NCBI GenBank assembly: GCA_951406725.2
Contig: OX597818.1
Coordinates: 27,796,001 to 27,858,000 of the forward strand
Direction of reading: 5' to 3'
DNA: 62,000 nucleotides
Source: Octopus vulgaris
Taxonomy: Eukaryota
Shown here: piece after piece, positions 33,503 to 60,752 of the stretch
Layout: each line of letters starts with the position of its first letter
How positions within the stretch are numbered: position 1 is the stretch's first letter
Translations under genes and position numbers: made by a program
The notes under the pieces: model-generated
What the model was told of the DNA's origin: nothing
The model's input: the letters and a program-made list of their open reading frames with translations, nothing else
The model's database searches: none

Positions 33503-33544
33503 GTGTTGTAGATTATTATGAGACTATTCCAGACAAACGTTACA
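33503..33544 (+). CDS. 42-nt tail exon: GVVDYYETIPDKRY
   Basis: Acceptor cttctctttaag, donor gtaagt. Phase 1-1, open. Carries a YETI tyrosine motif. Confidence 0.78.
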
Positions 33545-34459
33545 GTAAGTATAATTAACAGCAAATTACAAATAGTTTTATATTTAATATTGGTTTTAAT
33601 TTTTGGCACAAAGTCAGCAATTCTAGGAGAGGAGAAAATCAATTTCATTGACCCAATTGCTCAACTTGTATCTATTTTATTGACCTTGAAAGGATAAAAG
33701 GCAAAGCTGACCTTGGCAGAATTTGATCTGAGAATGTGAAGATGGGCAAAATGCTGCTAAATATTTTGTCCAGCATGCTAGATCTTCTGGAGATCACCTC
33801 AGTTTTATATTTAATATATTACTTTATACATATGTATATATGTATGTATTAATACATACATATATATGTGTGTATGTATGTATGTATGTATGTATGTATG
33901 TATGTATGTATGTATGTATGTATGTATGTATGTATGTATGTATGTATGTGTGTGTGTGTATGCATGTGCATGTATGTGTATGTATATATTATATATAAAG
34001 GGCTCTCCTGTCATTAGATGACATATGAGGATTCTGCAATTTCTTACTGAACAATCACACTAATGATTTGTTTATAGTGATAAAATGGTGGTGTTTGCAT
34101 AAGCTCACGCTTTCCATCAAATCAACATCATCTGCATAGATGCTTGACATGCCACATGTCAACAAAATGATCACAGAGCAATGTGAAATGAAGTGTTTGC
34201 TCAGGAACATAATGCAACACCTCGTCTGGGAATCGAAATCATGATCTCACAATTGTGAGTGCAGCACCCTAACCACTAAGCCATGCACCTTCACAATATA
34301 TATATCTAGAACCACACCAATAGCTTAGGAACGAAATTTAGGATTTCTTGGTTTTCAGTGAATTGATTTTGATAAAACTTTCCTCAGCTGGTTTGCACAC
34401 TATGGCTACACCATTGTTATGTTTTCAGTATTCTGTGAAACGTCCTTTCTTTTTTATTT

Positions 34460-35400
34460 TAGGTTCTTCAGTTGTTGGGTGTATCACACTAATAGCATCT
34501 CTCCTCTCTAAGAACAATGGGATGTGGAAAAGGCCTTAATAATGAAGAAAAGTCTGTCATCATCAAGGAAAGTGCTAAAGACATCTCTCTTGATGTAATT
34601 GCAGAGAAGGTTAAGTCATCATGTGGATACAGCTAGGCGATTCCTGAAGGACCCATCACCAAGGAAGAAATGATTCAGTTGTGGGACCTCCAGGACTATG
34701 ACAGCTAGGGATTTAAGGAATATTAGCTGCAGGTTACATGAGAAACCTGGACAAACAAGCAAAGCCATTTTCACCACCTCTGGACTTCCTTATGTACCAA
34801 AAACCACCAGAAATCACATCCTTGGGACTATGATTTCCATGCAAGAACCCCTGAAACTGCCTCCTTTAGCGTCCTGTCACAGGAATTTGAAGCTTCAATG
34901 GGCCCAAGAGTACATGATGTTAGAAGGAGTTGTGTTCTGTTCACTGATGAAACCAGGACAACCCTTGAATGACCTGATGGTTGGTCAAATGGTTGGGTCT
35001 ATTTTGGAGATTAGCATCACCAACGTTTACAAAGTCCACAACATGGTGGAGGAGTCATGTTGTGGGCTGGTCTCATTTGGACAGACTTGTTGGCCCAGTC
35101 AGGGTGCCTGGAGAGCTTAAAGTGACTGTAGCTGCCTACTGCAATCTTTAAAAGGAGGTCTTAGATTCATGGGTAGATGACATACCACTTTCACTTCTAA
35201 GGAATCTCATATTCACGCATGACAACACTTCCTCCCACTCTGCTGGGACCATCCAAATATTACTAGGGTTTTACAGCATACACGGCGAAAGGCTGATGGG
35301 CTGCCAGCATCTCTGGGTCTCAACCCTATGGAAAATCTTTAGTCCATCATTAAACAAGATGTTTATGCTGATGAACACCAATTTACATAAAAAAAGTCTT
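34460..35400 (+). mobile_element. Decayed Tc1-like transposase
   Basis: TARDLRNISCRL...KLQWAQEYM, VLFTDET, HDNTSSHSA, LNPMENL*SIIKQ. Terminal repeats not resolved. Confidence 0.75.
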
Positions 35401-37322
35401 TCCTGAACATATTGGAGTAACCATTTAATTATTTTGATAAAATCAAGGCACCCTCTCTATATGGGCCAGAGGAGAATTACTTGTGTGTCTAGAATCAAGA
35501 GGTCTATAAACTCACATATGTCATCAGTGTCAAAGGCTCTTGCCACCAATGAAGGAGCCTTCTGGGTCAGTTTGCTTGACATTAACTCAACTTTTATTGT
35601 AAAACAGAATTTCCTGACATGCATGATAATGTCTATGTCTCTATCATCGTTTTAGCATTTAGCAAATGTGAGTGCCTTATATAACAAGTCCCTTGACATA
35701 GTTGAATAAAAATCACTGTCATCATCCCATCATCATCACCATCATTTAATATCCATCTCTCATGCTAGCATGGGTTGGATAGTTCAACTGGATCCAATGA
35801 GCTGGAAGACTGCACCGAGTCCTAATGTCTGCCTTGCATGTTTTTTATAGTTGTCTGCACTTCCAAATAACAACCTTTTTACAGGGTGTGTTGGGTACTT
35901 TTTCATGGCACTGGCATTAGTGAGGTTGCCTAGTAACTTTCAAGACAAAGAATCCCCCCACCACCACCACCACCACCTCAACTGAATGGAGATATAGTAC
36001 AGAAGGATGTGGGTTTATTCCATGTATTGAAAGACTAAAGTATGATAGAGAGACAGGCATAGGAGTTTTGTTGTGGAGATACAAGGTTATGCTGCAATAT
36101 ACATTGGTGGGTGAGAGTAGCTAAAACAAGTGATAAAGATGGCAGTGATGTGTTGTTAAAATGTTTTCTTAAAGTAAAAGAAGGTAAATATAAGAGGAAA
36201 CATGGACAGACAATTGGAAAGGGTGGAGAGCAGCAGTATAATAAATCTGTAGATAGATGAAAAATAGGGAAATGATGTGTGGAGAGGGGAGAAGGTGAGA
36301 GAGATGTACATTGACAAAGATAGAGGTCATAAGAATGTAAAGGTAGATATAGTGAGTGGCTAACATGGAAGTGGGTGTCAACAGCAGGTGTGAGAGGGTG
36401 TTGAGAATGATAGAAGATATGAGACATTATTAAAGATGAGATATGGCAGTCATAAGATGTTGCTCAGCAGAAAGTGAGAGATAACTGGAGGCAAAGAAAA
36501 GAGTGATCAGTGGAAAATAATGTAGGAAAGGATGATATTGAGAATTAGGGGCAGATTTTAAAAGGAATTGGTTCCAGTGAAAAGGATAATTGGTACCACA
36601 AAAAGGAAAGGAAATATGTACAATTCTGCTCACATATGCTGAATAGTGCTGAATTTGTTGAATAGTGCTATAGTTAGAAGAGTGATGGAGGAATGTTAGG
36701 CAGTTAAAGACAAAGGAAGGCTGAACATGGACAGATTGGGTACAGGGGCAGGGGCCAGTGAGTTTATAGGCATAATCATAATGCTTTTAGGATTTCGCTT
36801 TCACTGTGACAGCACTTCTGAAGCACAATAAATCCTCGATTATCCCAGTGCTTTTTGATTTCTTCTGTAATGATCAGTATCCTGACAACAGCCATGTCAG
36901 GATATTGTGTGACATTAAGTGATTGGCACTTCTTAGAGTAGCCATACTCATCCATACATTTCACATAACCATACCAAATAATCTCATCTCTTGCACATTA
37001 CATCTGATTCCTTTTATGCCCAATTTTTCTCTTCTCACATTTACACTTTGTTGTACATACACACTCACATTGTACATCCCATAAGTGTACTAGTTTCATT
37101 CCTTTCTAGTCTTTACATATTCTCTACATTCAACCCCTGTCTCACTAACATGTCTGTCTAGCTATCTCTCTATATATACGTAAACACACACAGTGAAGGC
37201 ACATGACTCAGTGGTTTTGGTGCTGGACTTACAATTATGAGGTTGTGTTCTTGAGCAAGGTGCTTTATTTCACATTGCTCTAGCTCACTCAGCAGTAAAA
37301 ATGAGTTGCAATGTCACTGGTG

Positions 37323-39050
37323 GAATTTTGGAACAACACATCAATGGTCAGTGGTGACCACTTGACTTCTTCAGTAGACAGCTATGGCCTTCTGAACAAA
37401 AATACAATGCTTTTGACAGGGAACTGCTGGTTGTCCATCTAGCTGTCCGCTACTTTCACTATTTTCTTGAAGGCCGCACATTTACAGTGTTCACAGACTA
37501 CAAACCACTCACCTTTGCTATGAGCAAGCTCTCAGCACCTTTGTCTGCACACTAGTAACAACAGCTGTTGGCCATTTCTGAGTACACCACAGGCATCCAA
37601 CGCATAACTAGAAAAGCAACTCAGTTGCAAATGCACTCTCTCATGACCCTACCTGCTCTCACAACTACCAAGCCCCAATAAGGAAGGCCTGCATTATGAG
37701 GCTATGGCTGCAGTCCAACAGACAGATGACGAGAAAAGGCCCTACCACATTGCCATCATGTTCCTTTCCTTGCAGGATGTACACTTTGTTACAACTCTAC
37801 TGTGTGGTGTATCCACTGGGAAACCATGACCAATCATCCCATTAGGCTGGTGCAGGAAAGTTTTCAACATCATTCATAGACTGTCCTACTCAGATACTAG
37901 AGCTACATGGTACAAATTTATCTGGCACGGTATGGCCAAGCAAATTTGGGAGTGGAGCAAGAACTGCATCCCCTGTCAACAAGCCTGGGTCAATCAATAC
38001 ACCAATTATATATGTAATTCAGAAATAAAATACTATTTGCTAATGACATTAATTATACTTACTCTTTGGCTTGGATAAATTAGTAGCATCTGCACTTACT
38101 GCATCTTCGGCAACTATAAACCACCACAGGCTCATTTCAGCCACATCAACATTGACCTTGTTGGCCTCCTACCACCTTCACAAGATTGCTCGTACCCACT
38201 GACTTTGGTAGACTGCTATACTCATTGGCCTGAGGCTATCTCTCTCCAAAGTACAGAAACATAAGAAGCCAGCTGATCCTCCATCAAAAACTGGGTTGCT
38301 CATTTTGGTGTCCCAGACAACATCTCATCTGTTGGGGTCCACAGTTCACCTAAAAGCTGTGGAATGACCTTTTTGGAATCACAATGAAGTGCACAATAGC
38401 CTACCATCATCCATAGGCCAATGGGTTAGTGGAGAGATTTCACTGCGGCTTGAAGGAATTCCTGACAACCAGACTTAACTGGCCCAACTGAATTGATCCA
38501 CTTCTATTAGTGATGCTGGGAATCCCCACCACCCAAAAGGAACATCTTAACACTTCTTCTGCTGAAATGGTGTATGGTGCCTCTTTTACAATGCTAGGAG
38601 AGTTCATTCCAAACATGAAGTCAGACCCAGATTTCAAAAGGTACCTTGCGCAACTGAAAGACAAGTGTGGTCTAGTTGTACCTTATTCCCATGTCAACAT
38701 ACACCTAGATCATCTGTACTAAATGACTTCTGCTTGGCTAACCTTGTTTTTGTTCTATGTGACACACGATGAAAATCCCTCCAGTCACCCTACAATGATC
38801 CATATGAAGTCAAATGTCCAGAAGACAAATTATTCCAACTCCTAATTGGCAGACGACATGACATTGTTTCTATAGTTAGGATGAAACTGGTGTATCTTGA
38901 TATTGACAACACTTTCCAAATAAGCTCAACCACTAAACAGGGGCCACTCCAGGCAAATCACACCAACCCTTGGCAAGGAACAAACACCAAAGAGCCAAGT
39001 CACCACACGCATGGGCAGGGTAGTTAAAACACATTCCCAGTTCCAATGAC
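37323..39050 (+). mobile_element. Decayed Gypsy LTR retrotransposon pol (RNase H and integrase)
   Basis: KYNAFDRELL...FLEGRTFTVFTDYKPL, HINIDLVGLLP, ANGLVERFH, SSAEMVYG. Many stops and frameshifts. Confidence 0.85.
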
Positions 39051-39330
39051 AGTCAACAGTAGGGCATTGCCCAAGGATTTATGACATATGAACTGTATAC
39101 AGTTACTTTGCTGCAGACTAGCTAGGGAGTTGACAGGTGGCTGTTGCCCTCATGTGTTCAACTAAATAAATCTTTCACTAACACATTCTGGGTCTCTGTT
39201 AATTTTTTGTGTATAGCTTAACTAAAAGCATATCATAAATATTTTTCTATATGTCCTAGAAATAATTCATTTCAGATACAATGCAGTGCTCATACAAGCA
39301 ATAAATGATTTTTCATTTTCTTTTTTAAAG

Positions 39331-39372
39331 ATGCAGTAAGTGCAGATGCTACTAATTTATCCAAGCTAAAGA
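39331..39372 (+). CDS. 42-nt tail exon: NAVSADATNLSKLK
   Basis: Acceptor ttttcttttttaaag, donor gtaagt. Phase 1-1, open. Confidence 0.68.
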
Positions 39373-39440
39373 GTAAGTATAATTAATGTCATTAGCAAAT
39401 AGTATTTTATTTCTGAATTACATATATAATTAATATATAT

Positions 39441-41400
39441 ATCATCATCATCATCATTGTTTAACGTTCGTTTTCCATGCTGGCATGAGTTGGACAGTTT
39501 GACTGAGGTCTGGAGAGCCAGTGGCTGCACCAGGCTCCAATCTGCTGTGGCAATGTTTCTACATTTGGATGCCCTTCCTAATGCCAACCACTCTGAGAGT
39601 GTAGTGGGTGCTTTTTACATGCCCCCGGCACAGGAGCCAGTCAGGCAGGCCTGGCATTGACCATGTTCAGATAGTGCTTTTTACGTGCCATCAGTGCAAG
39701 AGCCAAGTGGGGGTTACTAGCATCGGCCATGTTCGGATGGTGCTTTTTACATACCACTGGCATGGGAGCCAGTTAGGGGGCACTGGCCACAGCTACAATA
39801 TTGGTTTTACTTGATTTGACTGGTTTTCTCAAGCATATCATATTGCCCAACACATCAGGGGTATTCTTAACAGAGCTGGACATGCATGGCTGCAATCTCT
39901 CTTTAGTTGCCAGGTCTTCTCAAACACAGCATATCTCCAAAGGTCTCAGTCTCCTGTCATTGCCTCTGTGTGGCCCAATGTTTGAAGGTCATGCTTCACC
40001 ACCTCATCCCATGGCTTCTTGGGTCTACCTCTTCCATAGGTTCCTTCCACAGTTAGGGAGTGGCACTTCCTCACACAGCTGTCCTCATTCATATGTAACG
40101 CATGGCCATACCAGTGTAGATGCCTCTCTTGCACACCACATGTGATGCTTCTTATGCCCAACTTTTCTATCAGGGTGCTTACATTCTGTCGTGTATACAC
40201 ACTGACATTACACATCCAGTGGATCATACAAGCCTACGCATGGCCTCAGTATTGATGGCCCATGTTTCACTGCCATGTAGCATGGCAGTTCAGACACACA
40301 TGCACCATCCAATCTATCTTTCATCCTGAGTAAGAGGCCCTTAGTTGCCGGCAGAGTTAGGAGCTTCCTGAACTTTGCCCAGACTATTCTTACTCACTAT
40401 ACTCTCAGAGCAAACATCCCCACTACAGACTTGGTTGCCAAGGTAGCAGAAGCTATCAACTACTTCTAGTTTCTCCCCATGGCATGTAATGGAATCTGTT
40501 TTCTCTATATCTTCAGTGTTTATTGCCCCTATGCATCTGCCACATGCAAAGACTATTTTCCTGGTTAACCTACCTTTGATATTGCTACACCTCTTATGTG
40601 TCTATAGCTTACAGTGGGTACATCATATGGAGTTTCTACCCACACCTTTTCTACAGATCGAGCAGGGCCATCTACCTGAAGGGGATAACAATTTGACAGC
40701 CATCCTACTTACTAAGACTTTGGTTTTTGCTAGGTTAACCCTAAGGCCCTTCGATTCTAGACGTTGCTTCCACACCTGAAACCTCTCCTCTAGTTCTGAT
40801 AGTGACTCAGCACAGAGGAGCTCCCAGGAGCATCCTGTCTTGAATTCCTCTGTTATTACCTGGAGGACTACATCTACTTGGAATTCTTCACTATACTCAT
40901 TGCCAACCCTCACCTTACCGACAGCATCCCTGTACAGGACTTGTACAGCTCTTACCAGCAACTCATCTATCCCCAGTTTCCTCATTGACCACCAGATAAG
41001 GGATTGGGGGACCCTGTCAAAGGCTTTCTACAAGTCAACAAAAGCCAAGTACAGAGGTTTATCTTTGATTAGATATTTCTCCTGCAGGTGCCTTATCAGC
41101 AATATAGCATCAGTGGTGCTTCTGCCTGGCACAAAACCAAACTGCATCTAATCTAGGCTAACTCTCTGTCTAATTAGTCTGGCTATGACCCTCTCTGTAA
41201 CTTTCATCACCTGATCCAATAATTTGATACCCCTGTAGTTATTTCTACCTAAAGCATCACCTTTCCCCTTGTAGCAGTTGACTATGGTGCTGTTACATCT
41301 GTCATTGGATACGACTCCTTCATGAACTACCTGATTTACGATGCAGGTGATAAGATCATAACCCACACCACCCAATATTTTAAGCATCCCAGCTGTGACT
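39441..41400 (-). mobile_element. Decayed 5'-truncated RTE LINE
   Basis: (CAT)n tail and 3' UTR, then MLKILGGVGYDLIT...NYRGIKLLDQVMK on the minus strand. Confidence 0.85.
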
Positions 41401-43377
41401 TGCAAGACTACAACAAACAGATGGAGGTTGAGAACTGAAACCTTATAAATCCCTACCTACACACTGAACTCATTGCTGACTTTCATCTTGCTAGCTGAAA
41501 CTCTTTACATGGCTTGTACAGTCCTCACAAACCATTTACCTATGTCTCATCTCCATGCAGCATTGCAGTTCGAACACAAGTGTCATACAACCTGGTTAAC
41601 AACATCTGGTTATCTGGCTGCTAATCCATGCTTCAAATACATATTCATGTAACACATGCTATCATGGGGAAATAAATGCAAGTGAACAATGGAATGTGTG
41701 TGTATGTGTGTCTGTATGTGTTTATATATGTATATATTTGTGTATGTTCATGTGTGTATACACACACACACACACACATTTACACGTAGTTAAGGTTATG
41801 AAAGCTTTCCCTACCTTCGTAACCTTAATTGATTTACCCAAGACATCTGTTCACTAGAACAACTGGTCCTTTCATTGGGTCGATACTGAAAAGACTCTCA
41901 TTCTCATGGAATCTTCATATCTAATAGCTTTCCATTGTAGCACTTGTGTCCCTCTAACTTTTAAGGATCAGTAATTCCAAGTGTGCCATTATCCACCAGT
42001 ACATAACTCTCTCCTGATATAAATTTGCACATTGATTAGTCAGTTGATTGTTAACATTGATGGTGTTGAAAATAGTTTTAATAGAATTTATTAGTAATTT
42101 GTCATTTGAGAAGAATTCAAAATGGGAAAAATGGTGAAACATGACATGATTTGGGTAATTCAGTTTCAGTAATATTAATGGGACCTGTAAATATTTCACA
42201 AAATTGATAGTAACCCTATTGGGTTATTTCTGGAAACTTTATCCAAAAAACCTGAAAGCATAACCTGTGTTATGTCTGTATGGAAAGATAGTCACACATC
42301 CTAAAATTCATTGAAAAATGAAAGAAATTGGAATACAATGATTACTTAATGCACTATATATACAGTTTATACACTTGATGCACAATTTTATAGACTTAAT
42401 ACACAGCACTCCTAAAATAAATATTCACTCTTATTTTTCCATTTTCCCCGTAAACAAACAAGAAAAATATCTTGTACCTAAGATACAGTCTTTAGTAAAA
42501 TTGCATATGTCTGCCATGTAAATAAGCGTTAATATTTCACTGAATTGCACTTACGTGCATGCGTTAAGTGACAGGTAATATAAAAATTTGGTTCAATCTT
42601 TAAAAAAATACCCTTTTTACTATCCAGTCACCACCACCACTGTCATCTCCTCTCTCTCTCTCTCTCACTCCTCTACCCCCCCCCCCCCACTGCCTTTCTT
42701 TAACCTCCATATTCGAACATTACCTCTCTACTAAAATTATAATTTTAACTCTCCTCCTCTAGCTTCAACTAAATTTTAACCACATAATATATATTACGAT
42801 CTCCCTATCACATGTCATGGACGCTTCTCTCTCCTTCTTTTTCTTTTCCCTCTTCCTGTCTCACTCTGTGCCTTATCCTCTTTTTCTCTCTCCTTTTTCT
42901 TTCTCTTCTCTTTTGCTTCAACAAATCATGTGAAAACATTACAATTACATTCCCTCTACCTCATAACATGGATGCTTCTCTCTCCACCCCCTTTTTCTCT
43001 CTCCCTCTTTTTTTCTCCTTCTTTTTCTCTAATCACATGAGAGCATTACCAATGGGCTAAGTAATGCAATGACAAGTAGAACTATTATAATATTGATTAG
43101 GCAATAAATATCTTGTACATTGAAATTTCTCATTAGAGAATAAGAACTTTTCTTATCTGAGAATCAGAAATTAAAACTGGTGCCTGATATGTGTTTATAT
43201 AGATATGAATATATATGTGTGTGCATGTGTGTGTGCTTGTGTGTGTGTGCATGTGTGCGCATGTGTGTGTGTGTGCTTGAGTCTATCATGTGTGTTCAGG
43301 TAGTCTCAGCACAGCCCAATATATTGTAAATATCATTTATAGCCATGTATCATATTCATTATTTTCTTTTCTTAAAG

Positions 43378-43407
43378 ACATGGATGATGCTTATGTTAAT
43401 GTTCTAA
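43378..43407 (+). CDS. 30-nt B-like tail exon (B0): NMDDAYVNVL
   Basis: Acceptor ttttcttaaag, donor gtaagc. Phase 1-1. Homologous to the B exons, including the upstream atttatagccatg. Confidence 0.78.
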   Translation, partial: TWMMLMLMF

Positions 43408-44065: not shown

Positions 44066-44125
44066 CTGAGAGAGAACAAGATGCTGAAGATAGTGAGCCC
44101 AGATATTTATCTGTGAAACACCCAG
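44066..44125 (+). CDS. Tail exon A1: TEREQDAEDSEPRYLSVKHP
   Basis: ttttaaag acceptor, CAG|gtaagt donor. 60 nt, phase 1-1. Confidence 0.85.
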
Positions 44126-44367: not shown

Positions 44368-44409
44368 ACACAGATGATATTTATGTCAATGTTTTAAGGA
44401 AACCTGATG
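44368..44409 (+). CDS. Tail exon B1: DTDDIYVNVLRKPD
   Basis: tttcttacag acceptor, G|gtaagt donor. 42 nt, phase 1-1. Confidence 0.85.
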
Positions 44410-44657: not shown

Positions 44658-45385
44658 CGTCATTTAACTCCATTTTCTATGCTAGCATGGGTTGGATGGT
44701 TTGACCAGGGTCTGGGAAGCCAGAAGGCTGCACCAGGCTCCAGTCTGATCTGGCAGTGTTTCTACAGCTGGATGCCCTTCCTTACGCCAACCACTCTGTG
44801 AGTGTAATGGGTACTTTTTATGTGCCACTGGCATAGGGGCCAGAGGAGGCTGGCAACGTCAATGATCGGTTGGTGCCTTTTACGTGCTACCGGCATGGAA
44901 GCCAGTCAAGGTGGTGCTGGTATCAACCACATTCGGATGGAACTTTTTATGTGCCACCAGCACGGGTATCACAACTACAATTTCCATTTGATTTTCATTT
45001 TGATGTTGATGTACTTGATTCAATAGGTCTCCTCAGGCACAGCAGGTCACCCTACAATCCAAGGTACTTTTCAATGGGCTGGGGCTGGTTATACAAAACT
45101 AGTATAGGATACAGCTGTGAACTCACTTTATTTGCTGGGCCTTTGCAGTCAGAGCATATCTCAAGAGGTCTCAGTCTTTTGTCATTGCCTCTGTGAGGCC
45201 CAACGTTCGAAGGTCATGCTGGACCACTTCATCCCATGTCTTCTTGGGTCTACCTCTACTCTGGATTCCTTCAACTGTTTGGGAGTGGCACTTCTTTACA
45301 CATCTCTCCTCGTCCATCTGTAGTACATGACCATACCAACACAAACATCTCTTGCGTGCCACATCCTGTTCTTCTTATGTCCAAC
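44658..45385 (-). mobile_element. RTE LINE 3' fragment
   Basis: 3' UTR plus WYGHVLQMDEERCVKKC...GRPKKTW on the minus strand. Confidence 0.85.
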
Positions 45386-46676
45386 ATTACCCAGTGTAAG
45401 CTATGGACACATAAGAGGTGCAGCAATATCAAAGGAAGGCTAACTGGGAGGATAGTTTTTGTATGTGGCAGATGCTTAGGAGCAATAAATACTGAAAATG
45501 TGCAGAGAACAACTTCTGCCACATTCCAGGGAGAAAAACTAGAAGTAGTTAGCTTCCATTACCTAGGTGACCAAGTCAGTAGCAGGGGAGGGTGCACTGA
45601 AAGTGTACCTGCTAGAATAAGAATAGCCAGGGCAAAGTTCAGAGAGCACTTACCTCTGCCAGTGACAAAGGGCCTCTCACTCAGAGTAAAACGTAGACTG
45701 TATGAAGCATGTGTACAAACGGGCATGCTACATAGCAGTGAAACATGAGCCGTGACTGCTGAGGACATGCGTAAATTCACAAGGAATGATGTATGTGTAA
45801 TGTCAGTGTGCATACTTGACAGCGTGTGAGTACCTTGAGAGAAAAGTTGGACCTTAGAAGCATCAGATGTATTGTGCAAGAGAGGTGACTGCGATGGTAT
45901 GGTCACATGGCAAGAATGGATGAGGATAGCTGTGTGAAAAAGTGCTACACCCTAGCGGTTGAGGGAACCTGTGGAAAAAGTAGACTCAGGAAGACCTGGG
46001 ATGAGGTGGTGAAGCATGACCTTCGAACATTAAACCTCACCAAGGCAATGACTAGTGACTGAGACCTTTGGATGTATGCTGTGCTTGAGAAGACCTGGCA
46101 AGCCAAGTGAGACCATAAACTTGTGGCCTATGCCAGGGGTGTAACCAGCCCACTTATGTATACCTTTCCTTTATTGGATACTAAACACTGTTGACGCAAG
46201 TGAAATCGAAATTGAAATCAAATTTGAGGACTTGCATCCGTGCTTGTGGAGTGCTAAGAGCATCATCTGAGCATGATTGATGCCAGAGAAGTTGACTGGC
46301 TTCTGTGCTGGTGGCATGTAAAAAGCACCATTTGAGCATGATCATTACCAGCATTGCCTTACTGGAACGTGAAAAATCATTTGAGCAAGGTTGCTGCCAT
46401 TGCCGCTGGACTGGCTCCTGTTCAGGTGGCATGAAAAAAACACCATTTGAGCATGGCCATTGCCAGTAGTGCCTGACAGGCCCTCGTGCCAGTGGCTCAT
46501 AAAAGCACCCACTACACACTTGGAGTTGTTGGCATTAGGAAGGGAGGGCATCCAGCAGTAGAAACTCTGCCAGATCAGATTGGAGCCTGGTGCAGCCATC
46601 TAGTTCGCCAGTCCTCAGTCAAATTGTCCAACCCATGCTAGCATGGAAAGCGGGCGTTAAACGATGATGATGATGA
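45386..46676 (+). mobile_element. RTE LINE 3' fragment, head-to-head with the previous copy
   Basis: TQCKLWTHKRC...FHYLGDQ, then the 3' UTR ending cgttaaacgatgatgatg. Confidence 0.85.
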
Positions 46677-46992
46677 CACTTATATATTTATACATGTCTT
46701 TTTTACATGTTTGTGTCCTAAGACTGTGGCCATGCTGGGGTCTTCATTCAGTTTCCCTCGACCAAATTCACTCACACAACTTTCATTGGCCCAAGTCTAT
46801 AGTAGAATACACATGTTGTAGGACTTAACCCAGAACCACATGTTTCAGAAGTAGACTTCTTATGACAAATACACATCTGCAAAATGTTGAGAATGGCAAA
46901 ATCTCATAATATGTACAAGCAACTGCTGGTAGACAATCCTACTCAGTTTTGATATTCTACCCTTTTATTGGTCCTTACCTTTCATAATGCAG

Positions 46993-47033
46993 TATATAAG
47001 CACATATGTGATGAGAATCCATTATATGAATAA
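46993..47033 (+). CDS. Candidate terminal coding exon T: VYKHICDENPLYE*
   Basis: Pyrimidine-rich tract then taatgcag acceptor. The phase-1 frame is open to TAA and contains NPLY. The stop overlaps a locally repeated sequence, so it may be chance. Confidence 0.4.
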
Positions 47034-47813
47034 ACTAAATAATTATATGACTAATATTGAATACAATAGATGCTTGCCCACACATGAGACACAAAGTATT
47101 AAAGAGATATGCAATGGAGATGCCACATGTAAACAAACACTGGAACTGAATATAGAAAAAGGACAATGGAGTATATGCCATATTTCAGGAGTTCTTGCCC
47201 TTTTATCAGCACCTATCCAACCCATTAATCATCTACGAATTCATTGTTTGAATAACCACTATATCTAATTCATTGTTGGTTTACATCTGGCATATCAGGT
47301 ACGAATTGTTGTAACAAAATCACTGCTTTATTTATATGAATAAACTAAATAATTATATGACTAATTTTGAATGCAATAGATGCTTGCCTACACATGATAC
47401 ACAAAGTATTAAACAGATATGCAATGGTGAATGTGATCAGCTTTAGTTGTTGAGTATACAAAGTTACTCTCGCTTGTCGATTACTCTAGCAAGAAAGAAA
47501 CCTTAGAAACAATCTAATTTCTATAAATGTATTTGTGAGTGGCTACATCATCATTTTTAATTATCAGTTTAAATATTTAAGTGACAGAATCAGTACAATA
47601 TTGTACTCTAACATTGATGGAGTAAAAATTAGTGTCAATATATTCTGTGATCAAAGCCCATTGAGGTAAGAGACTGATAGATAAAGTACTAGGCTTAAAA
47701 ATGTATGTAAAGTAAGTGCTGAAGTTTACTTGTTACTTTCTGTGCAAAAGCAATATATTTAAAAACATTCTCCCCAAACAATAATGATGCCCACTTTTAT
47801 TTCACTTTTAAAG

Positions 47814-47873
47814 GTGAGAGAGAGCAAGATTCTGAAGATAGTGAGCCCAGATATTTACCTATGAAACACCCAG
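47814..47873 (+). CDS. Tail exon A2: GEREQDSEDSEPRYLPMKHP
   Basis: Intact aag acceptor and gtaagt donor. 60 nt, phase 1-1. Confidence 0.75.
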
Positions 47874-48113
47874 GTAAGTACAATCAATATTGTTAGTACA
47901 TAGCATGATTTTTAAAATGATCTTAAAGAAAAACCAACAATCATGGAATGTATATTCTCATTTAGTCTGTTAACATATTTCTACATGCATATATGTGTGT
48001 GTGAGTGTGCTTGAGTCCATGTCATTAGTGTTTATTATGGCAATATCGCAACAATACTAACATGATATAAATGTAATTTATAGCCATGACTTAAATACAT
48101 TGATTTCTCATAG

Positions 48114-48155
48114 ACATGAATGATGTTTATGTCAGTGTTTCAAGGAAACCTGATG
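48114..48155 (+). CDS. Tail exon B2: DMNDVYVSVSRKPD
   Basis: ttctcatag acceptor, gtaagt donor. 42 nt, phase 1-1. Confidence 0.75.
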
Positions 48156-48396
48156 GTAAGTGCATTAGCAATCCATAAAAAAATTACATGCACTGGAGCA
48201 AGAGTTAGCAAATATCATGGTTCAGTGTTTCATTAAGCAGTATAGTCAGTTTAATGTATGCCTTTTATCATTTACTTGTCTCAGTCATTGCACTGCAGCC
48301 ATGCCAATGCCTTGAAGGGTTTAGTTCAACAAATATTGGTTTATCATGCCAGACTGCTAAGCTCTCTTGATATAAAGAAACCAGTATCCATTATCA

Positions 48397-52287: not shown

Positions 52288-52331
<44 letters not shown>

Positions 52332-52612
52332 CTTTTCCTTCTAAATGTGGAGTATATGAAACAGGTACATCTAAAGAAAGGGAGTATTCTTTATGTTGTA
52401 TGTCTCATTTCTCTGTTTTTTTAATAATTGTTCGAAAAAGTTCATTTCTATGGTTTTGCTTTTATGTTTCCATTTCTCATTCTGTTCCACGTTTTTTCGA
52501 TGTCCTGTACCCATATATGCATGTATGTAGGTATGTGCATATATGTAGGTATATGCATATATGTAGGTATGTACATATATGTATGTATATATGCATATAT
52601 TTATATACTATT

Positions 52613-52653
<41 letters not shown>

Positions 52654-52689
52654 AAATAAAAAAAAGGAAAATACACACACTTACATAGT

Positions 52690-53262
52690 TTTAATATAAT
52701 TTTTAATATATCAACCGGTTTCGCTATCGCTATTCATGATATTATGTTTTACTTATTTGAATATATATTTTTTCTTAAGAAGAAATTTTGTCCATATTGA
52801 GTGTGATGAAATTCACGAGTGAATGACTTCACAAGTAGATAAATAAAGGGAGGTAATTGGTTGTCGTTATTATTGTTATTGTTGTGGGTAAGGGAGATAA
52901 CTCTTTAGCTTTCGGTAATGGGTGGAGATTAGATATGTGTACAGACAGAGACAAGTTTCAAAAACCTTGTTTAGTAGGGGATTTATGTACAGTGATGTAA
53001 TTGTGAATTGAAATACGTAAAAAGATAAAAGTTGGTTATGCATGCATATTTAGATGTGTTTTGTATTTTTCAATGAAAAAAGTTTCTTTATTTAAACGTT
53101 CCAGTTGAGAGATTGCGTCTTTGCACTGGTAGAAAGGGAAGACTGTGAAATTTGGTTTGAGGTTACCTGCACATTTTTCTATATGTTCACTGTATTGTGG
53201 GAAATGGATTTGCTCAAGGTCATACTTGATTGTCCAATATAGTGGTGTCCGCAACACGAGCA
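52690..53262 (-). mobile_element. Penelope-like element 3' fragment (GIY-YIG C-terminus)
   Basis: QIHFPQYSEHIEKCA...FTVFPFYQ...KETFFIEKYKTHLN, and gaaaccggtt in the downstream terminal region. Confidence 0.6.
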
Positions 53263-53329
53263 GGTTATTACATAAATTAGAAAGTTTTTCGAAAATCTTA
53301 ACCTAAGTATTACTTATGAATATAACACT

Positions 53330-55000
53330 AAGATAGTTAATTTTTTAGATACTACTTTAGATTTAAACTCGAAATTGAATTACCCATATAGGAAAGATGG
53401 TGAAATTACTAGATATGTGAATAAATTATCAAATCACCCCCAAATATATTGAAATCGATAGTTAAAAGTATTTCGAGAAGAATTACTAAATTATCATCTA
53501 ACAATGAAATTTTTAATTCCCATTCATATCATTACAATGATACCTTGGCTAGAGCAGGATATAACCAAGAAATTGCCTTCCTCGATCTTGAGAATCTAAC
53601 ACTTTCAAATAAGAAAATGAATAAAAATAGCTCAAATAATATAAAATCTTCAAATTTAAACAAATATGAATCAACCCAAACCGATAACCTATCATATAAA
53701 TCTGATACAAATAGCAGAAATAGCGGACAAGACACAAATAGGTATAAAAAACTTAAGTTAAATAAAATAAATGTAAATGAAAATCTAAAAATTACTCCTA
53801 CTGATAAAAAACCCCAATAAATATATATATATAAGACTGAAAATAATAACAAAATTCTTAGGAATATAGATAGCACTAATCTATCCCACCCTTACTTAAA
53901 TAAGAAATTCAAAAATAAAAATATCATATGGTTGAATATACCTTTCAACTAGGTAATATCTACGAATATATATAGCAAATTTATGTCCATATTAGAAACA
54001 AACTTCCCTACTTCCCATAAATATAATGAAATATTTTCTCGTAAAACAGTTAGAATATCATACTCTACTCTACCAAATATAAGTACCATCATAACTAAAT
54101 TAAATAGAAAAAATATTAAACTAGCCAGAAATGTTGGAAATAACAATAATAATAATAATAAAGGTAAAGATAATAATAATACTAATAATGATAATATTAA
54201 TATAAACAATAATAATAATTATAATAATAATATCAATAATAACATTAATAATGAGAATGATACTAACAATAATAATAGAAATAAAAATAATAATTATATG
54301 AATAGAAATAAAAATAATAAGATATTTCTACTAATGAAAATAATATTATTGAAATTGACGAGGTGCATGATATAAATGATATTAGGACCAATAATATAAA
54401 TGTTATTGAATACAGTTCCAGTACATATGAATGCATAGATACTACTTGTATACCCGATGGTAATAAAATAAACTTATTTGATAAGACAGTAGAGGAAAAA
54501 TTAGAAACTAATAGTCAAAACCATAACTTACCTAATAATATAATTATAGATAATGATGAAACTCTTAATGTTAATAATGGTTTTAATAACAATAATAAAA
54601 GCAACTTATTTCCAAATAATACTAATATCAAAAATCATTCCCCTAGTTGTAATTGTAGAACTAAGTCCCACTGTCCGGTATCTGGTCCAAAACGTATTAC
54701 ATAAATATACAGTAATGACTTCAACAAATAACTATATTTACTTTGGTTGCACAATAGATCTGAAGAAATGTATAAACAATTACAATTCATCCTTTAGACT
54801 TAAACTTAAGGCAAGTTGCACAACATTATCTAATAAAATTTGGGAGTTAAAAGAAAATAAAATTAGATTAGCCTTAAATGAGACATAGTAAAAAAAATAG
54901 TAGAGATGGATGTGAGCTTTGCTCTAAGGAGATATATGAAATTTTGAAACATAGGGATAATTTAAACTTATTAAATAACCATTTTGAACTGGGAGTATTG
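53330..55000 (+). mobile_element. Decayed Penelope-like element (RT thumb, Asn-rich linker, GIY-YIG)
   Basis: SRRITKLSSNNEIFN...LARAGY, IIWLNIPF, VRISYSTLPNI, CNCRTKSHCP, YIYFGCT, LSNKIWELKE. Confidence 0.85.
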
Positions 55001-55342
55001 TGTATATATTGTACTACTTGTACATTTAAATATTTTTAAAAATAGCATTCTGTTATTCCTAAATTTTAGATCTTAATGTTTTTTATAAATCAATAAGGAA
55101 ATAGCATACCCTGCTACTTTTTAGTATTTAATAAGAAATAGTTATTAAGAAATTTTAATAACGTAAGCAAATTGAATAAAGTTAAATAAAATTTTTTAAA
55201 TTTCTATAATACATAAATTCTATATATCTAATGAAGTTATTAAGTTGTATACTTACTCCACAATAAGTTTTAAAGATTTGGTAATTTTCATATCTATTTC
55301 TGCGAGAATTCTACTCCACCTAATCATTTTCAATATTATAAA

Positions 55343-56490
55343 CTATAACTGGTTGAAGTCCTTTATTTTCGGCCGAAAAGAGGTTGTCACAGTTCTAGGA
55401 CAGCACTCTTCACCCTATGAGATGACATCTGGTGTACCACAGGGATCTGTTGTTGGCCCCCTTTTATTTGTTGCATATGTTAATGACATAGATGCCAACT
55501 TAAAGAATGCCACAGTGCTGAAATATGCAGATGACATGAAGCTATACCTCGAAATAAAGAGGTCAGATCCTGTACACTATAGATCTCTATTGCAAGCAGA
55601 CCTGGACACAATGCAGCAGTGGATCATGGACTGGCAACTCAAGCTGGCTGTAGACAAATGTACCACCATGCATTTTGGGAGGAGAAACCCAGAATCCACC
55701 TATTCCCTCCACAACACTAATCTCAAAAAGTCTTCGTGTGAACGTGACCTGGGTGTTATTGTCGACAGTGATTTGCGTTGGACAAAAGACATCACTAAAA
55801 TTGTCAAGAAGGCTGAGGGTGTCTTGGCATCACTCACCAAATCCTTTGTGAGCTGCTCTCTGACTATCTATCTGCGGCTTTATATAGCTATGGTAAGACC
55901 TCACCTGGAATTTGCATCACCGATCTGGAACTCCTATCTTGCCCAGGATATCAATCGTCTGGAAGCCGTTCAGTGACGTGCAACCAAAAGAATACCATCC
56001 ATCAGGCATTTGCCATATTCTGAATGCCTTACTTTCCTGGGCATGGACACATTGAAACTCCGACGTCTGGCAGCTGACTTGGCAGACACCCATAAAATTA
56101 TCAACCATCTTACAAACGATAACTCTGATCACCTTTTCAAACTCCACCCATCTAACACCCGTGGACATATTTACAAAGTCAGAAAACAGCACAGCTCCCA
56201 TGACTTTAGGAAACATTTTTTCACGCTGGGAGTTGCTGAAGCATGGAACAAACTGCCGGCATCGGTTGTTAGTTGTCGGAGCACTGCATCCTTCAAAACT
56301 TCCATGCTTTCTGAGATTCACCAACACTACACCTGATTTCCTCCCCTTCATACACACACAAGCATGTATCTGATTCATACATTGTTCGCTTTCCAGGCAT
56401 TTGTACATTACTGCATACATTTATACACACATTCTGACAAGTTGTGGTGCACCTGAGCACTGTATGCAATAATTTCATTATTATCATTAC
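55343..56490 (+). mobile_element. 5'-truncated CR1-clade LINE
   Basis: SGVPQGSVVGPLLF, KYADDMKLY, ERDLGVIVD, VRPHLEFASPIW, one stop at 55974, then RRLAADL...TRGH...WNKLP and an AT-rich tail. Confidence 0.88.
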
Positions 56491-57167
56491 TTATGTTTTC
56501 AGAAATTATCTTTCAAAGCATTAATGACATCTAGAGACAAGGCCTTTTGTTAACCAAACACAATAGAGTACAAAGTATATTAAACCATTTTATAAGTCCG
56601 CACTACTGAGGTAGCTGTGCACTTAAATAATGTGTTCAGGTCATCTCTACCGTTTTTCTGTAGGAATTACAACCAGCATTGATTTCATTATGACATTTCG
56701 TATCTGAGATGTCACGTAAACAAACACTGGAACTGAATATAGAAAAAAGGGAATGGAGTATATGCCATATTTCAGGAGTTTTTGCCCTTTTATCAGCACC
56801 TATCCAACCCTTTAATCATCCATGAATTCATTGTTTGAATAACCACTATATTTAATTCATTGTTGGTTTACATCTGGTATGAAATGTTGTAACAAAATCA
56901 CTGCTGTATTTATACGAATAAACTAAATAATTATATGACTAATATTGAATGCAATAGATGCTTGCCTACATAGGATACACAAAGTATTAAACAGATATGC
57001 AATGGTGAATGTGATCAGCTTTAGTTGTTGAGTATCCAAAGTTACTCCTGCTTCTTGATTACTCTAGCAAGAAGGAAACCTTAGAAACAATCTAATTTTT
57101 ATAAATGTATTTGTGAATGGCTACATCATCATTTTTAATTGTCAGTTTATATATTGAAGTGACGGAA

Positions 57168-57298
57168 TCATCATCATCATCATCATCATCATTTAACGTC
57201 CGCTTTCCATGCTAGCATGGGTTGGACGGTTCAACTGGGGTCTGGGGAGCCCGAAGGCTGCACCAGGCCAGTCAGATCTGGCAGTGTTTCTACAGCTG
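57168..57298 (-). mobile_element. RTE 3' tail fragment replacing part of one duplication unit
   Basis: (CAT)n tail and palindrome, truncated at tacagctg and joined directly to aggtgagagactg. Absent from the sister units. Confidence 0.8.
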
Positions 57299-57448
57299 AG
57301 GTGAGAGACTGATAGATAAAGTACTAGACTTAAAAATGTATATAAAGTAAGTGCTGAAGTTTACTTGTTACTTTCTGTGCAAAAGCAATATATTTAAAAA
57401 CATTCTCCCCAAACAATAAAGATGCCCACTTTTATTTCACTTTTAAAG

Positions 57449-57508
57449 GTGAGAGAGAGCAAGATTCTGAAGATAGTGAGCCCAGATATTTACCTATGAA
57501 ACACCCAG
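57449..57508 (+). CDS. Tail exon A3: GEREQDSEDSEPRYLPMKHP (no B partner)
   Basis: Intact splice sites. The downstream intron is rearranged after about 20 nt. Confidence 0.6.
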
Positions 57509-58364
57509 GTAAGTACAATCAATATTGTACAATCATAATGCAGTATATAAGCACATATGTGATGAGAATCCATTATATGAATAAACTAAATAATTATATG
57601 ACTAATATTGAATACAATAGATGCTTGCCCACACATGAGACACAAAGTATTAAAGAGATATGCAATGGAGATGCCACATGTAAACAAACACTGGAACTGA
57701 ATATAGAAAAAGGACAATGGAGTATATGCCATATTTCAGGAGTTCTTGCCCTTTTATCAGCACCTATCCAACCCATTAATCATCTACGAATTCATTGTTT
57801 GAATAACCACTATATCTAATTCATTGTTGGTTTACATCTGGCATATCAGGTACGAATTGTTGTAACAAAATCACTGCTTTATTTATATGAATAAACTAAA
57901 TAATTATATGACTAATTTTGAATGCAATAGATGCTTGCCTACACATGATACACAAAGTATTAAACAGATATGCAATGGTGAATGTGATCAGCTTTAGTTG
58001 TTGAGTATACAAAGTTACTCTCGCTTGTCGATTACTCTAGCAAGAAAGAAACCTTAGAAACAATCTAATTTCTATAAATGTATTTGTGAGTGGCTACATC
58101 ATCATTTTTAATTATCAGTTTAAATATTTAAGTGACAGAATCAGTACAATATTGTACTCTAACATTGATGGAGTAAAAATTAGTGTCAATATATTCTGTG
58201 ATCAAAGCCCATTGAGGTAAGAGACTGATAGATAAAGTACTAGGCTTAAAAATGTATGTAAAGTAAGTGCTGAAGTTTACTTGTTACTTTCTGTGCAAAA
58301 GCAATATATTTAAAAACATTCTCCCCAAACAATAATGATGCCCACTTTTATTTCACTTTTAAAG

Positions 58365-58424
58365 GTGAGAGAGAGCAAGATTCTGAAGATAGTGAGCCCA
58401 GATATTTACCTATGAAACACCCAG
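58365..58424 (+). CDS. Tail exon A4: GEREQDSEDSEPRYLPMKHP
   Basis: Intact splice sites. 60 nt, phase 1-1. Confidence 0.72.
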
Positions 58425-58664
58425 GTAAGTACAATCAATATTGTTAGTACATAGCATGATTTTTAAAATGATCTTAAAGAAAAACCAACAATCATGGAAT
58501 GTATATTCTCATTTAGTCTGTTAACATATTTCTACATGCATATATGTGTGTGTGAGTGTGCTTGAGTCCATGTCATTAGTGTTTATTATGGCAATATCAC
58601 AACAATACTAACATGATATAAATGTAATTTATAGCCATGACTTAAATACATTGATTTCTCATAG

Positions 58665-58706
58665 ACATGAATGATGTTTATGTCAGTGTCTCCAGGAAAC
58701 CTGATG
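58665..58706 (+). CDS. Tail exon B4: DMNDVYVSVSRKPD
   Basis: Intact splice sites. Two synonymous differences from B2 (GTC TCC vs GTT TCA). Confidence 0.72.
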
Positions 58707-59413
58707 GTAAGTGCATTAGCAATCCATAAAAAATATTACATGCACTGGAGCAAGAGTTAACAAATATCATGGTTCAGTGTTTCATTGGGTAGTATAGTCA
58801 GTTTAACTTATGCCTTTTATCTTTTACTTGTTTCAGTCATTGCACTGCAGCAATGATAATCCCTCAACTTGGACAAATATTGGTTTCTCATGCCAGACTG
58901 CAAAGCTCTCTTGATATATATAAACCTCGCTAAAGTGACATCAACTGTGCTTGTGCTACGTAAAAGGCATTAAGTCCACTCTGTTGAGTGGTTGGTTTTA
59001 AGAAGGGATTCCAGTTGTAAACATCCTGCCAAATGACTTACAGAATTCTAGTGCAGTCTTCAACCTGATCTGCATTTGTCAAACTGTCCGACTTGTGCCA
59101 GGATGGAATGCGTACAGTAAATGACGAGGATGAGGATGTTGATGATATAATTATGTTCATACAATAGGGTACTTTCAGTTTCTTTCTGCCAAATCCATTT
59201 ATGAGGTTTTTGTTGGCCTGAAGCTTTAGAAGAAAATGCAATGTGAATGTGGTTGGGAAGCTAGCTGCTTATCACACAGTAATACCCGTGCCTATGTATG
59301 TTTGTATATAAATTATAGAACTTATTTTTTTGGTTTCTTTCTATGCAGCATCAAACATTTAAAACATACTCTGCAAACAATAAATATGCCCATTTTTATA
59401 TAATGTCTTGTAG

Positions 59414-59473
59414 ATGTGAAAGAGCAGCATGCTGAAGGTAGTAAGCATGAATATGTATATATAAAAGAACTGG
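59414..59473 (+). pseudogene. Diverged A-type exon with dead donor: DVKEQHAEGSKHEYVYIKEL
   Basis: tcttgtag acceptor, 60 nt, open. Flanks are homologous to the A exon flanks, but the donor reads G|ggaagt instead of G|gtaagt. Confidence 0.65.
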
Positions 59474-60406
59474 GGAAGTGCTATAAATATTGTTAGTACA
59501 CAGCATGATTTCTGAAATTATCTTAAAAAATTTAATGACATGCAGAGACAAGGTGTTTTGTTAACCAAACATAATAGAGTACAAAGTATATTAAACCATT
59601 TTATAAGTCAATATCATGTACTACTGAGTTAGCTGTGCTCTTAAATCTCGTGTTCAGGTCATCTCTACTATTTTTCTTTTGGAATTATAACCAGCATTGA
59701 TTTCGTTATGACATTTGGTATATGAGATGCCACATGTAAACAAACACTGGAATTGAATATAGAAAAAGGACAATGGAATATATGCGATATTTTAGCAGTT
59801 TTTGCCCTTTTATCAGCACCTATCCAACCTTTAATCATCCATGAATTCGTTGTTTGAATAACCACTATATCAAATACATTGTTGGTTTACATCTGGTATG
59901 AAATGTTGTAACAAAATCACTGCTGTATTTATACGAATAAACTAAATAATTATATGACTAATATTGAATGCAATAGATGCTTGCCTACACATGATACACT
60001 AAGTATTAAACAGATATGCAATGGTGAATGTGATCAGCTTTAGTTGTTGAGTATCCAAAGTTACTCTCGCTTGTTGATTACTCTAGCAAGAAAAAAACCT
60101 TAGAAACAATCTAATTTCTATAAATGTATTTGTGAGTGGCTACATCATCATTTTTAATTATCAGTTTAAATATTGAAGTGATGGAATCAGTACAATATTG
60201 TACTAAACATTGATGGAATAAAAATTAGTGTCAATATATTCTGAGGTCAAAGTCCATTGAGGTGAGAGACTGATATATAAAGTATTAGGCTAAAAGTATA
60301 TATAAAGTATGTCCTGAAGTTTACTTGTTACTTTCTGCGCAATAACAATATATTAAAACATTCTCCCCAAACAATAAAGATGCCCACTTTTATTTCATTT
60401 TTAAAG

Positions 60407-60466
60407 CTGAGAGAGAACAAGATTCTGAAGATAGTGAGCCCAGATATTTACCTATGAAACACCCAG
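60407..60466 (+). CDS. Tail exon A5: AEREQDSEDSEPRYLPMKHP
   Basis: Intact splice sites. 60 nt, phase 1-1. Confidence 0.75.
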
Positions 60467-60710
60467 GTAAGTACAATCAATATTGTTAGTACATAGCATG
60501 ATCTTTAAAATGATCTTAAAGAAACACCAACAATCATGAAATGTATATTCTCATTTAGTCTGTTAACATATTTCTACACGCATATATGTGTGTGTGAGTG
60601 TGTTTGAGTCCATGTCATTAGTGTTTATTATGCTAATATCACAAAAATACTAACATGATATAAATGTAATTTATAGCTATAACATAAATACTTGCATAAA
60701 TTTCTCATAG

Positions 60711-60752
60711 ACGTGGATGATGTTTATGTCAGTGTTTCAAGGAAACCTGATG
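60711..60752 (+). CDS. Tail exon B5: DVDDVYVSVSRKPD
   Basis: ttctcatag acceptor, gtaaat donor. 42 nt, phase 1-1. Confidence 0.72.

Follow-up and report, generated by a model that had tools for sequence, protein, structure and literature searches.

In PECAM-1 the tail exons 10-16 are alternatively spliced, skipping of individual exons gives isoforms that differ in signalling and adhesive behaviour, and exon 14 with its tyrosine switches the ligand specificity (PMC2132561). Dscam of the shrimp Penaeus monodon can include or skip each of seven tail exons, which gives at least 384 tail isoforms, and in Daphnia Dscam immunoreceptor tyrosine-based inhibitory or activation motifs (ITIMs, ITAMs) are included in or excluded from the tail, the exclusion of one tail exon shifting the reading frame (PMC6851185). 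Optional tyrosine-bearing tail exons are therefore a principle that is already known from PECAM-1 and from crustacean Dscam. Here we analyze a stretch of 62,000 nucleotides (nt) from Octopus vulgaris (assembly GCA_951406725.2, contig OX597818.1, positions 27,796,001 to 27,858,000, termed the window), which holds the membrane-proximal half of one immunoglobulin (Ig) superfamily receptor gene on the + strand, with its transmembrane exon and most of its cytoplasmic tail. The gene is the ortholog of LOC106879981 of O. bimaculoides, forms part of the O. sinensis model LOC115212116 (protein P0048) and is predicted to encode a type I membrane receptor. What is new here is that the putatively optional tail exons are tandem copies of one two-exon candidate docking cassette, that the copy number of this cassette differs between congeners and that the receptor family is octopus-specific, as far as the database matches go, and undescribed. 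To our knowledge, almost nothing is known about signalling by cephalopod cell-surface receptors.

Like PECAM-1 (CD31; exons 9/10-16), the octopus gene encodes an Ig superfamily receptor whose tail is spread over short exons, several of them with a single tyrosine; multiple short exons are present in the gene itself, and skipping is seen in annotated isoforms of its O. bimaculoides ortholog and paralogs. Unlike in PECAM-1, where the tail exons are unique sequences and the key tyrosines belong to ITIMs that recruit SHP-2, the octopus tail is made of repeats of two module types with motifs of the pYxxM and pYxN type (pY, phosphotyrosine), has no motif that fits an ITIM, and varies in module number between species. 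No sequence homology to PECAM-1 was found in a sequence search of PDB. With arthropod Dscam tails, whose exons carry SH2-binding and ITAM/ITIM-type motifs (PMC6851185), the locus shares tail exons that are probably optional and not mutually exclusive. The Dscam ectodomain, however, combines Ig with fibronectin type III (FNIII) domains and has mutually exclusive exon arrays (PMC6851185), whereas all domains detected in the octopus protein are Ig. A Pfam scan of the O. bimaculoides ortholog returned no FNIII domain, and the window showed no array of alternative exons for Ig half-domains. The first-pass annotation of this DNA had spoken of a Dscam-like use of duplicated exons, which is apt as far as the exons are duplicated and skippable, but overlooks the closer precedents of the PECAM-1 tail (PMC2132561) and of Dscam's own optional tail exons (PMC6851185). 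Unlike the Daphnia tail exon whose exclusion shifts the frame, the octopus tail exons from position 33503 on are all symmetric, and the putatively optional ones are recent duplicates of a two-exon cassette.

Two further systems are related in layout. In CD3 zeta-type ITAM arrays the motif, YxxL/I followed by a spacer of 6-8 residues and a second YxxL/I, is split over two small exons, and tandem duplication of this pair has given several copies; their number is fixed, and the arrays belong to an adaptor chain without Ig ectodomains. The octopus gene likewise has a tyrosine docking unit that spans an exon pair and is repeated in one tail, but its pair reads YLxM, eight residues, YV[NS]V and resides on the receptor itself. 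CD19 and CD28 have docking tails with sites of the PI3K-p85 and Grb2 classes, which are few, non-repeated and not known to be encoded as one site per skippable exon. What the octopus tail has in common with them are short linear tyrosine motifs of the p85 and Grb2 classes in the disordered tail of an Ig superfamily receptor, a likeness that implies no homology.

Results

Twelve short exons of the receptor tail

Between positions 33503 and 60752 the first-pass annotation had listed twelve exons of 42, 42, 30, 60, 42, 60, 42, 60, 60, 42, 60 and 42 nt, all in phase 1-1 and all but one with a tyrosine. A scan for open segments bounded by AG and GT recovered every one of them with the same coordinates, length and phase, and 11 of the 12 indeed carry a tyrosine, the exception being exon 39331-39372. 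Each exon is preceded by a pyrimidine-rich tract and an AG acceptor, is followed by a GTAAG or GTAAA donor and is open in the phase 1-1 frame. Since open segments between AG and GT are common by chance (1142 candidates in 29 kb), the significance of the exons rests on homology. When ten of the twelve were spliced conceptually, together with two small exons, and compared with the tail of O. sinensis P0048, 281 of 293 residues (96%) matched without a gap; the two exons that have no match in P0048 are 43378 and 57449. We are highly confident that the exon anatomy is as described.

Exon 33503-33544 (42 nt) encodes VVDYYETIPDKRY, which has three tyrosines, is part of P0048 and has a diverged copy in the O. 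bimaculoides ortholog. It is followed by exon 39331-39372 (42 nt), which encodes the tyrosine-free AVSADATNLSKLK and is also found in P0048. The remaining exons are of two kinds, termed modules A (60 nt) and B (42 nt). A shortened B-type exon of 30 nt, 43378-43407 (MDDAYVNVL), has good splice sites and no counterpart in the O. sinensis or O. bimaculoides models; it is either optional or unused. A module 1 (44066-44125, EREQDAEDSEPRYLSVKHP) and B module 1 (44368-44409, TDDIYVNVLRKPD, pYxN type) form the first complete pair, and A module 2 (47814-47873, EREQDSEDSEPRYLPMKHP, pYxxM type) and B module 2 (48114-48155, MNDVYVSVSRKPD) the second, all four being present in P0048. The solo A module at 57449-57508 (60 nt) belongs to a truncated repeat unit that lacks a B partner; its splice sites are intact, exons 47814 and 58365 encode the same peptide, and P0048 lacks a counterpart. 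The third pair consists of A module 3 (58365-58424) and B module 3 (58665-58706), which differs from exon 48114 by two synonymous changes, and the fourth of A module 4 (60407-60466) and B module 4 (60711-60752, VDDVYVSVSRKPD), both again found in P0048.

That the tail exons are symmetric from 33503 on is correct, but the tail starts earlier and runs past position 60752. Upstream lie two small asymmetric exons, 18695-18713 (19 nt, phase 1 to 2, AVKCKK), which was located with the P0048 peptide and is bordered by a polypyrimidine-AG acceptor and a GTAAGT donor, and 25078-25094 (17 nt, phase 2 to 1, DISSAK). Jointly they encode the 12 residues AVKCKKDISSAK of P0048, and the asymmetry of the first means that it needs to be used together with the second. 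Past the window the tail has at least eight further exons, which are given here in window coordinates extended beyond position 62,000: an A exon at 64207, a B exon at 65,051-65,092 that has Phe instead of Tyr, a 54-nt A variant at 70613, a B exon at 70884, another 54-nt A variant at 72577, a B exon at 72,881-72,922 with His in place of the tyrosine, a B exon at 76560 and, about 23.5 kb beyond the window end, the terminal exon at 85455, which encodes G-Y-Q and the stop.

Any subset of the exons had been said to be skippable in frame, and this holds: the 21 tail exons that the whole gene has can be joined in 210 pairs, and no such junction contains a stop; the residue at the junction varies with the combination that is joined. 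The first-pass annotation had taken the symmetry to allow a combinatorial splicing code, a term that says too much. Ig superfamily genes generally use phase 1, and phase 1-1, the default of the superfamily, is also required for in-frame exon duplication, so that the symmetry is no evidence of a selected code. Moreover, the twelve exons represent only about four independent types (33503 type, 39331 type, A and B), the rest being recent duplicates. Because these duplicates are 86-98% identical including their introns, uniform length and phase are largely inherited. The symmetry permits skipping and does not show that skipping was selected.

Two module types with candidate SH2 docking motifs

Module A encodes an acidic stretch followed by S-E-P-[RK]-Y-L-x-M-K-x-P, with the pYxxM-type core E-P-[RK]-Y-L-x-M, whereas module B encodes [DN]-M-D-D-[VA]-Y-[VI]-[NS]-V-S-[RK]-K-P-[DG], with the pYxN-type core D-D-V-Y-V-N-V. 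Motif logos were derived from the family proteins, with 34 distinct A modules and 33 distinct B modules as input. The A logo reads x-x-E-[ED]-Q-x-A-E-x-S-E-P-[RK]-Y-L-x-M-K-x-P, where Tyr is invariant (34/34) and Met occupies +3 in 26/34 modules, and the B logo [DN]-M-D-[DG]-[VA]-Y-[VI]-N-[VI]-S-[RK]-K-P-[DG], with Tyr as well as Asn at +2 in 29/33. In the tail of the gene itself the A cores read YLPM, with two exceptions: exon 44066 has YLSV, and the 54-nt variants past the window end have YLCM. The B cores in the window are YVNV in exons 43378 and 44368 and YVSV in the amplified copies 48114, 58665 and 60711.

By SH2 specificity, pYxxM belongs to the PI3K p85 class and pYxN to the Grb2/Drk class. 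By their motifs, modules A and B are therefore putative docking sites for SH2 domains of the PI3K p85 and the Grb2/Drk class, respectively. In the amplified YVSV copies the Grb2-defining Asn at +2 has been lost, and these copies may have another partner or bind nothing. Two old B modules with Phe or His instead of Tyr are conserved between species and kept in sister-species models (Phe in O. sinensis, His in O. bimaculoides); they could be non-phosphorylatable spacers or decoys.

Two other motif assignments were considered and discarded. No module fits the ITIM consensus ([ILVS]-x-Y-x-x-[ILV]), since position -2 is occupied by Pro in module A (E-P-R-Y) and by Asp in module B (D-D-V-Y), and no tyrosine of exon 33503 fits it either. 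An ITAM, with the pattern Y-x-x-[LI], 6-12 residues of spacer and Y-x-x-[LI], could be sought in the A-B junction, which reads Y-L-P-M, eight residues, Y-V-S-V; here the spacing fits and both +3 residues (Met, Val) lie outside the consensus.

A two-exon cassette amplified in the genus Octopus

Self-BLAST and repeat families define a tandem array on the + strand that extends from 43921 to the end of the window at 62000 and on to about 65.3 kb in extended coordinates. It consists of units of about 1.4-2 kb, each with one A-intron-B cassette, and its copies are 86-98% identical in self-comparison. Two units, 46982-48382 and 57533-58926, are 97.6% identical overall and 100% identical over 300 nt. 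Across the family, which has at least ten loci on three contigs, the duplication unit appears to be a cassette of about 550 nt that comprises the A exon, an intron of about 245 nt, the B exon and about 80-100 nt of flanking intron.

Five A-B pairs, plus the solo A, are found in the O. vulgaris gene, five in the O. sinensis model and two in the O. bimaculoides model. In the latter, the order of the tail is transmembrane segment, a 12-residue segment, 33503 type, 39331 type, A, B, A, B, B, A', B(His), B and terminal exon. Two pairs in O. bimaculoides as compared to five in the other two species imply that the second pair was amplified in the vulgaris/sinensis lineage. The cassette has been amplified by unequal crossing-over within the receptor gene.

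A whole-genome search with a 401-bp A-intron-B stretch gave about 40 scored matches of 68-96% identity at roughly ten loci on C5 (the contig of the window), C28 and C31. In total there are 47 candidate places, clustered in a few loci that resemble genes of the family, and an origin of the cassette from a transposable element was rejected because of this small number and this clustering, which mark it as a feature of the gene family. The matches at C28:7,991,480-8,006,567 and C31:2,845,865-2,870,039 have identical scores and near-identical spacing, which suggests either a very recent segmental duplication or a redundant assembly of the same paralog.

Regional identities were computed for 218 distant pairs (less than 72% identity) of 25 paralogous cassettes; as the pairs are phylogenetically non-independent, the numbers are descriptive. 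Identity is 74% in the 82 nt upstream of exon A, 69% in exon A, 66% in the A-B intron, 64% in exon B and 52% in the 100 nt downstream of exon B, and falls to the random level of 25% in the far flanks, so that the cassette has sharp edges. These may mean that the cassette is the unit of duplication or gene conversion, or that its intronic sequence is constrained. Conserved intronic flanks are typical of regulated alternative micro-exons. In most of the 25 cassettes the exon lengths of 60 and 42 nt are fixed and the frames open, and intron length ranges from 213 to 252 nt. Finally, a conserved RNA structure of the Dscam type (docking/selector or looping) was looked for with RNAalifold in 12 diverse cassettes; the consensus, at -7.1 kcal/mol over 542 columns and with one weak hairpin around the exon A donor, is unconvincing.

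Skipping of cassette exons in annotated isoforms of O. bimaculoides

Five isoforms are annotated for the O. bimaculoides ortholog. In isoform X5 a single 14-residue B exon is missing, which corresponds to the amplified exon 48114-48155, and isoform X3 has an alternative G-Y-Q terminal exon. For the paralog LOC106874069 there are eight RefSeq isoforms, and for the paralog LOC106869178 fourteen distinct proteins from two annotation generations; the isoforms derive from two O. bimaculoides annotation rounds, the UniProt entries of 2015 and the later RefSeq XP_0528 series. In both paralogs the ectodomain is invariant, and the isoforms differ by tail blocks of 14 or 20 residues, in many combinations, and by alternative ends. 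At the genomic locus of LOC106874069 (L035) the variable blocks are single exons of 42 or 60 nt in phase 1-1, with AG and GTAAGT borders.

The first-pass annotation had proposed that splicing tunes the number and type of phosphotyrosine sites. Duplicated, symmetric and skippable exons, together with the cassette skipping annotated in the O. bimaculoides ortholog and in two paralogs, support the proposal in part and, for the family, indirectly; by analogy with these relatives exon skipping probably occurs in the O. vulgaris gene itself.

Ectodomain, family and surroundings of the gene

Three Ig-domain exons of the gene lie inside the window and two more just upstream. Those in the window are 4854-5102 (249 nt, AG/GT borders), whose peptide is nearly identical to P0048 and to the O. 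bimaculoides ortholog P0015, 7220-7474 (255 nt), which matches the same two proteins, and the membrane-proximal 9668-9976 (309 nt), whose counterpart in the ortholog, residues 680-772, is recognized by Pfam as I-set. They encode the same domains as the ortholog and are nearly identical to P0048. The transmembrane exon 13598-13699 (102 nt, donor GTTGGT), whose peptide is present in P0048, encodes a single hydrophobic segment, GTIIGCFVGIVLLITLVLLIY, followed by basic residues, as judged by eye. All five Ig-domain exons examined are in phase 1-1, as is the transmembrane exon, in keeping with an Ig superfamily receptor. The receptor protein, judged from the ortholog, has about nine Ig domains, and every domain detected by Pfam is of this fold (Ig_3, I-set, Ig_2, ig and C2-set_2 on the ortholog). 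A long trinucleotide repeat of the CTG/CAG type (5,110-5,440) begins about 10 nt or less from the donor of Ig exon 4854-5102. The non-consensus GTTGGT donor of the transmembrane exon is conserved in an O. bimaculoides paralog (L035 38,794-38,870). In the O. bimaculoides ortholog, the transmembrane exon appears to end earlier and is followed by a different juxtamembrane segment of 12 residues.

Protein searches found relatives in O. bimaculoides, O. sinensis and O. vulgaris only, all of them annotated as 'uncharacterized'. A profile search, which needs shared words of five residues and may miss distant relatives, gave 17 proteins, all from the three Octopus species. Among the database matches the receptor family thus appears to be restricted to Octopus, and a full-text literature search found no description of a cephalopod family of this kind. 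A sequence search of PDB with the ectodomain gave only weak, generic matches (ICAM-1, Robo2 and Dscam, E values of about 1e-6 to 1e-4). A specific ectodomain homology to PECAM-1, CD22, Siglec or nephrin was rejected, as none of them is among these matches.

In the O. sinensis and O. bimaculoides models of the gene (P0048, P0001 and P0015), the same Ig5-9, transmembrane segment and tail are preceded by different N-terminal blocks, which comprise Ig1-4 in about 335 residues and share about 70% identity, and the O. sinensis model continues from the tail of the receptor gene into that of a downstream paralog. Such joins reflect either a real long-range or alternative usage of 5' blocks among tandem paralogs or fused gene models.

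The gene range of the O. bimaculoides ortholog is 258 kb. The window sequence, from a genome of 2.8 Gb, is AT-rich and contains many microsatellites and decayed transposons. A perfect trinucleotide microsatellite (ATC/GAT type) of about 1.4 kb, at 23,190-24,610 in the intron between tail exons 18695-18713 and 25078-25094, yields open frames of 450-500 codons in all six frames. Transposon remnants lie in tail introns at 19,250-20,260, 34,500-35,400 and 45,100-46,040, and also, past the window end, at about 78.3-79.0 kb. Among them are open frames that resemble reverse transcriptase (YADDL motif region) and a fragment of a mariner/Tc1-like transposase that contains stops, and the remnant at 45.4-46.0 kb recurs downstream with 87.5% identity.

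Discussion

We propose that the tail of this receptor works as a multivalent scaffold of pYxxM and pYxN sites, with a valency that depends on the copy number of the cassette and probably also on exon skipping, and assign the whole chain a probability of about 0.6. Ligand-induced clustering would lead to phosphorylation of the tail tyrosines by a Src-type kinase, as the acidic residues found at -2 to -4 and the aliphatic one at -1 are suited to substrates of such kinases. The phosphorylated tail would then act as a multivalent scaffold in which pYxxM recruits an SH2 adaptor of the PI3K p85 type and pYxN one of the Grb2/Drk type. Since all exons from 33503 on are in phase 1-1 and their junctions are free of stops, the number and the mix of sites are adjustable, which would happen in evolutionary time through cassette copy number and in the cell through exon skipping.

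A number of observations weigh against this proposal. All modules depart from the ITIM consensus, and the A-B pair resembles an ITAM only loosely. Codon positions 1-3 are equally conserved across the paralogous cassettes, which indicates that constraint at the protein level is weak outside the core motif, and within the array the A-B intron is as similar between copies (89-99.6%) as the exons are (81-100%). Altered and decayed copies exist: Tyr has become Phe at 65051 and His at 72881, a truncated B at 62478 (about 62.48 kb) runs into a stop, and a pseudo-A at about 64.7 kb has lost 18 nt and shows GA where the GT donor would be. A search of protein databases with the tail alone returned no transcript-derived fragments for the gene in O. 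vulgaris, only a paralog. The sole O. sinensis model, for which no isoforms are listed, includes all five A-B pairs and fits constitutive inclusion, and the RefSeq isoforms are computed models, short reads being unable to resolve the near-identical exons of the amplified block.

Some of these points would be expected if the tail were a constitutive scaffold of high valency that includes all duplicated exons, the skipping annotated in the relatives being splicing noise or an artefact of the models. The strong consensus donors (GTAAGT) of the exons agree with this, as does the O. sinensis model. However, two independent annotation rounds of O. bimaculoides list many isoforms in which cassette skipping is confined to the tail, several of the skipped exons are unique in sequence and cannot be mis-mapped, and conservation in the intronic flanks of the cassette equals or exceeds that in the exons. 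We consider constitutive inclusion unlikely, if worth taking seriously. The extra copies could also be neutral by-products of unequal crossing-over in repeat-rich introns, many of them unused or decaying pseudo-exons, in which case the 'code' would be accidental. An identity of 86-98% with introns as similar as exons, the decay of the copies near 62.48 and 64.7 kb, the absence of the solo A and the truncated 30-nt B from all models and a copy number that varies between species would all be accounted for in this way. Yet every copy in the window retains splice sites, exact length, open frame and tyrosine, both differences between exons 48114 and 58665 are synonymous, five pairs are used in the O. 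sinensis model, and older paralogous cassettes keep exon length and frame while intron length drifts, so that we find a neutral origin of the array distinctly improbable.

Finally, haplotypes that were wrongly placed in tandem could make the gene seem richer in exons than it is. Two of the units have an overall identity of 97.6%, which rises to 100% over 300 nt, and the identical scores of the C28 and C31 matches hint at redundancy. But the independent assembly and annotation of O. sinensis have the same five A-B pairs in the same order, and the O. vulgaris units differ in indels, junctions and flanking insertions; an assembly artefact is therefore hardly credible. On this evidence we prefer the multivalent scaffold with adjustable valency.

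The locus also carries a warning for annotation, as near-identical mini-exons and neighbouring paralogs give fused or incomplete gene models. At the same time it is a natural experiment that can show how short linear tyrosine motifs, with one motif per symmetric exon, become more numerous, diverge (YVNV to YVSV, Tyr to Phe or His) and are chosen for inclusion. If the skipping is regulated, the principle of the PECAM-1 and Dscam tails would have arisen independently in molluscs, and exon-cassette copy number would have been added to it as an evolutionary dial on receptor valency.

A wider idea, which we put forward as a tentative and rather doubtful one, is that octopuses have evolved multi-Ig receptors whose signalling strength can be adjusted genetically, through copying of the cassette by unequal recombination (from 2 to 5 or more pairs between congeners), and through inclusion or skipping exon by exon. 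Each cell would then receive a chosen number and mix of PI3K-type and Grb2-type sites, and the conserved intronic flanks of the cassette would be the regulatory handles. If true, the octopus receptors would be an independent lophotrochozoan counterpart of the vertebrate leukocyte-receptor and FcRL/CD22-type families and a rare case in which exon copy number directly sets the valency of a receptor.

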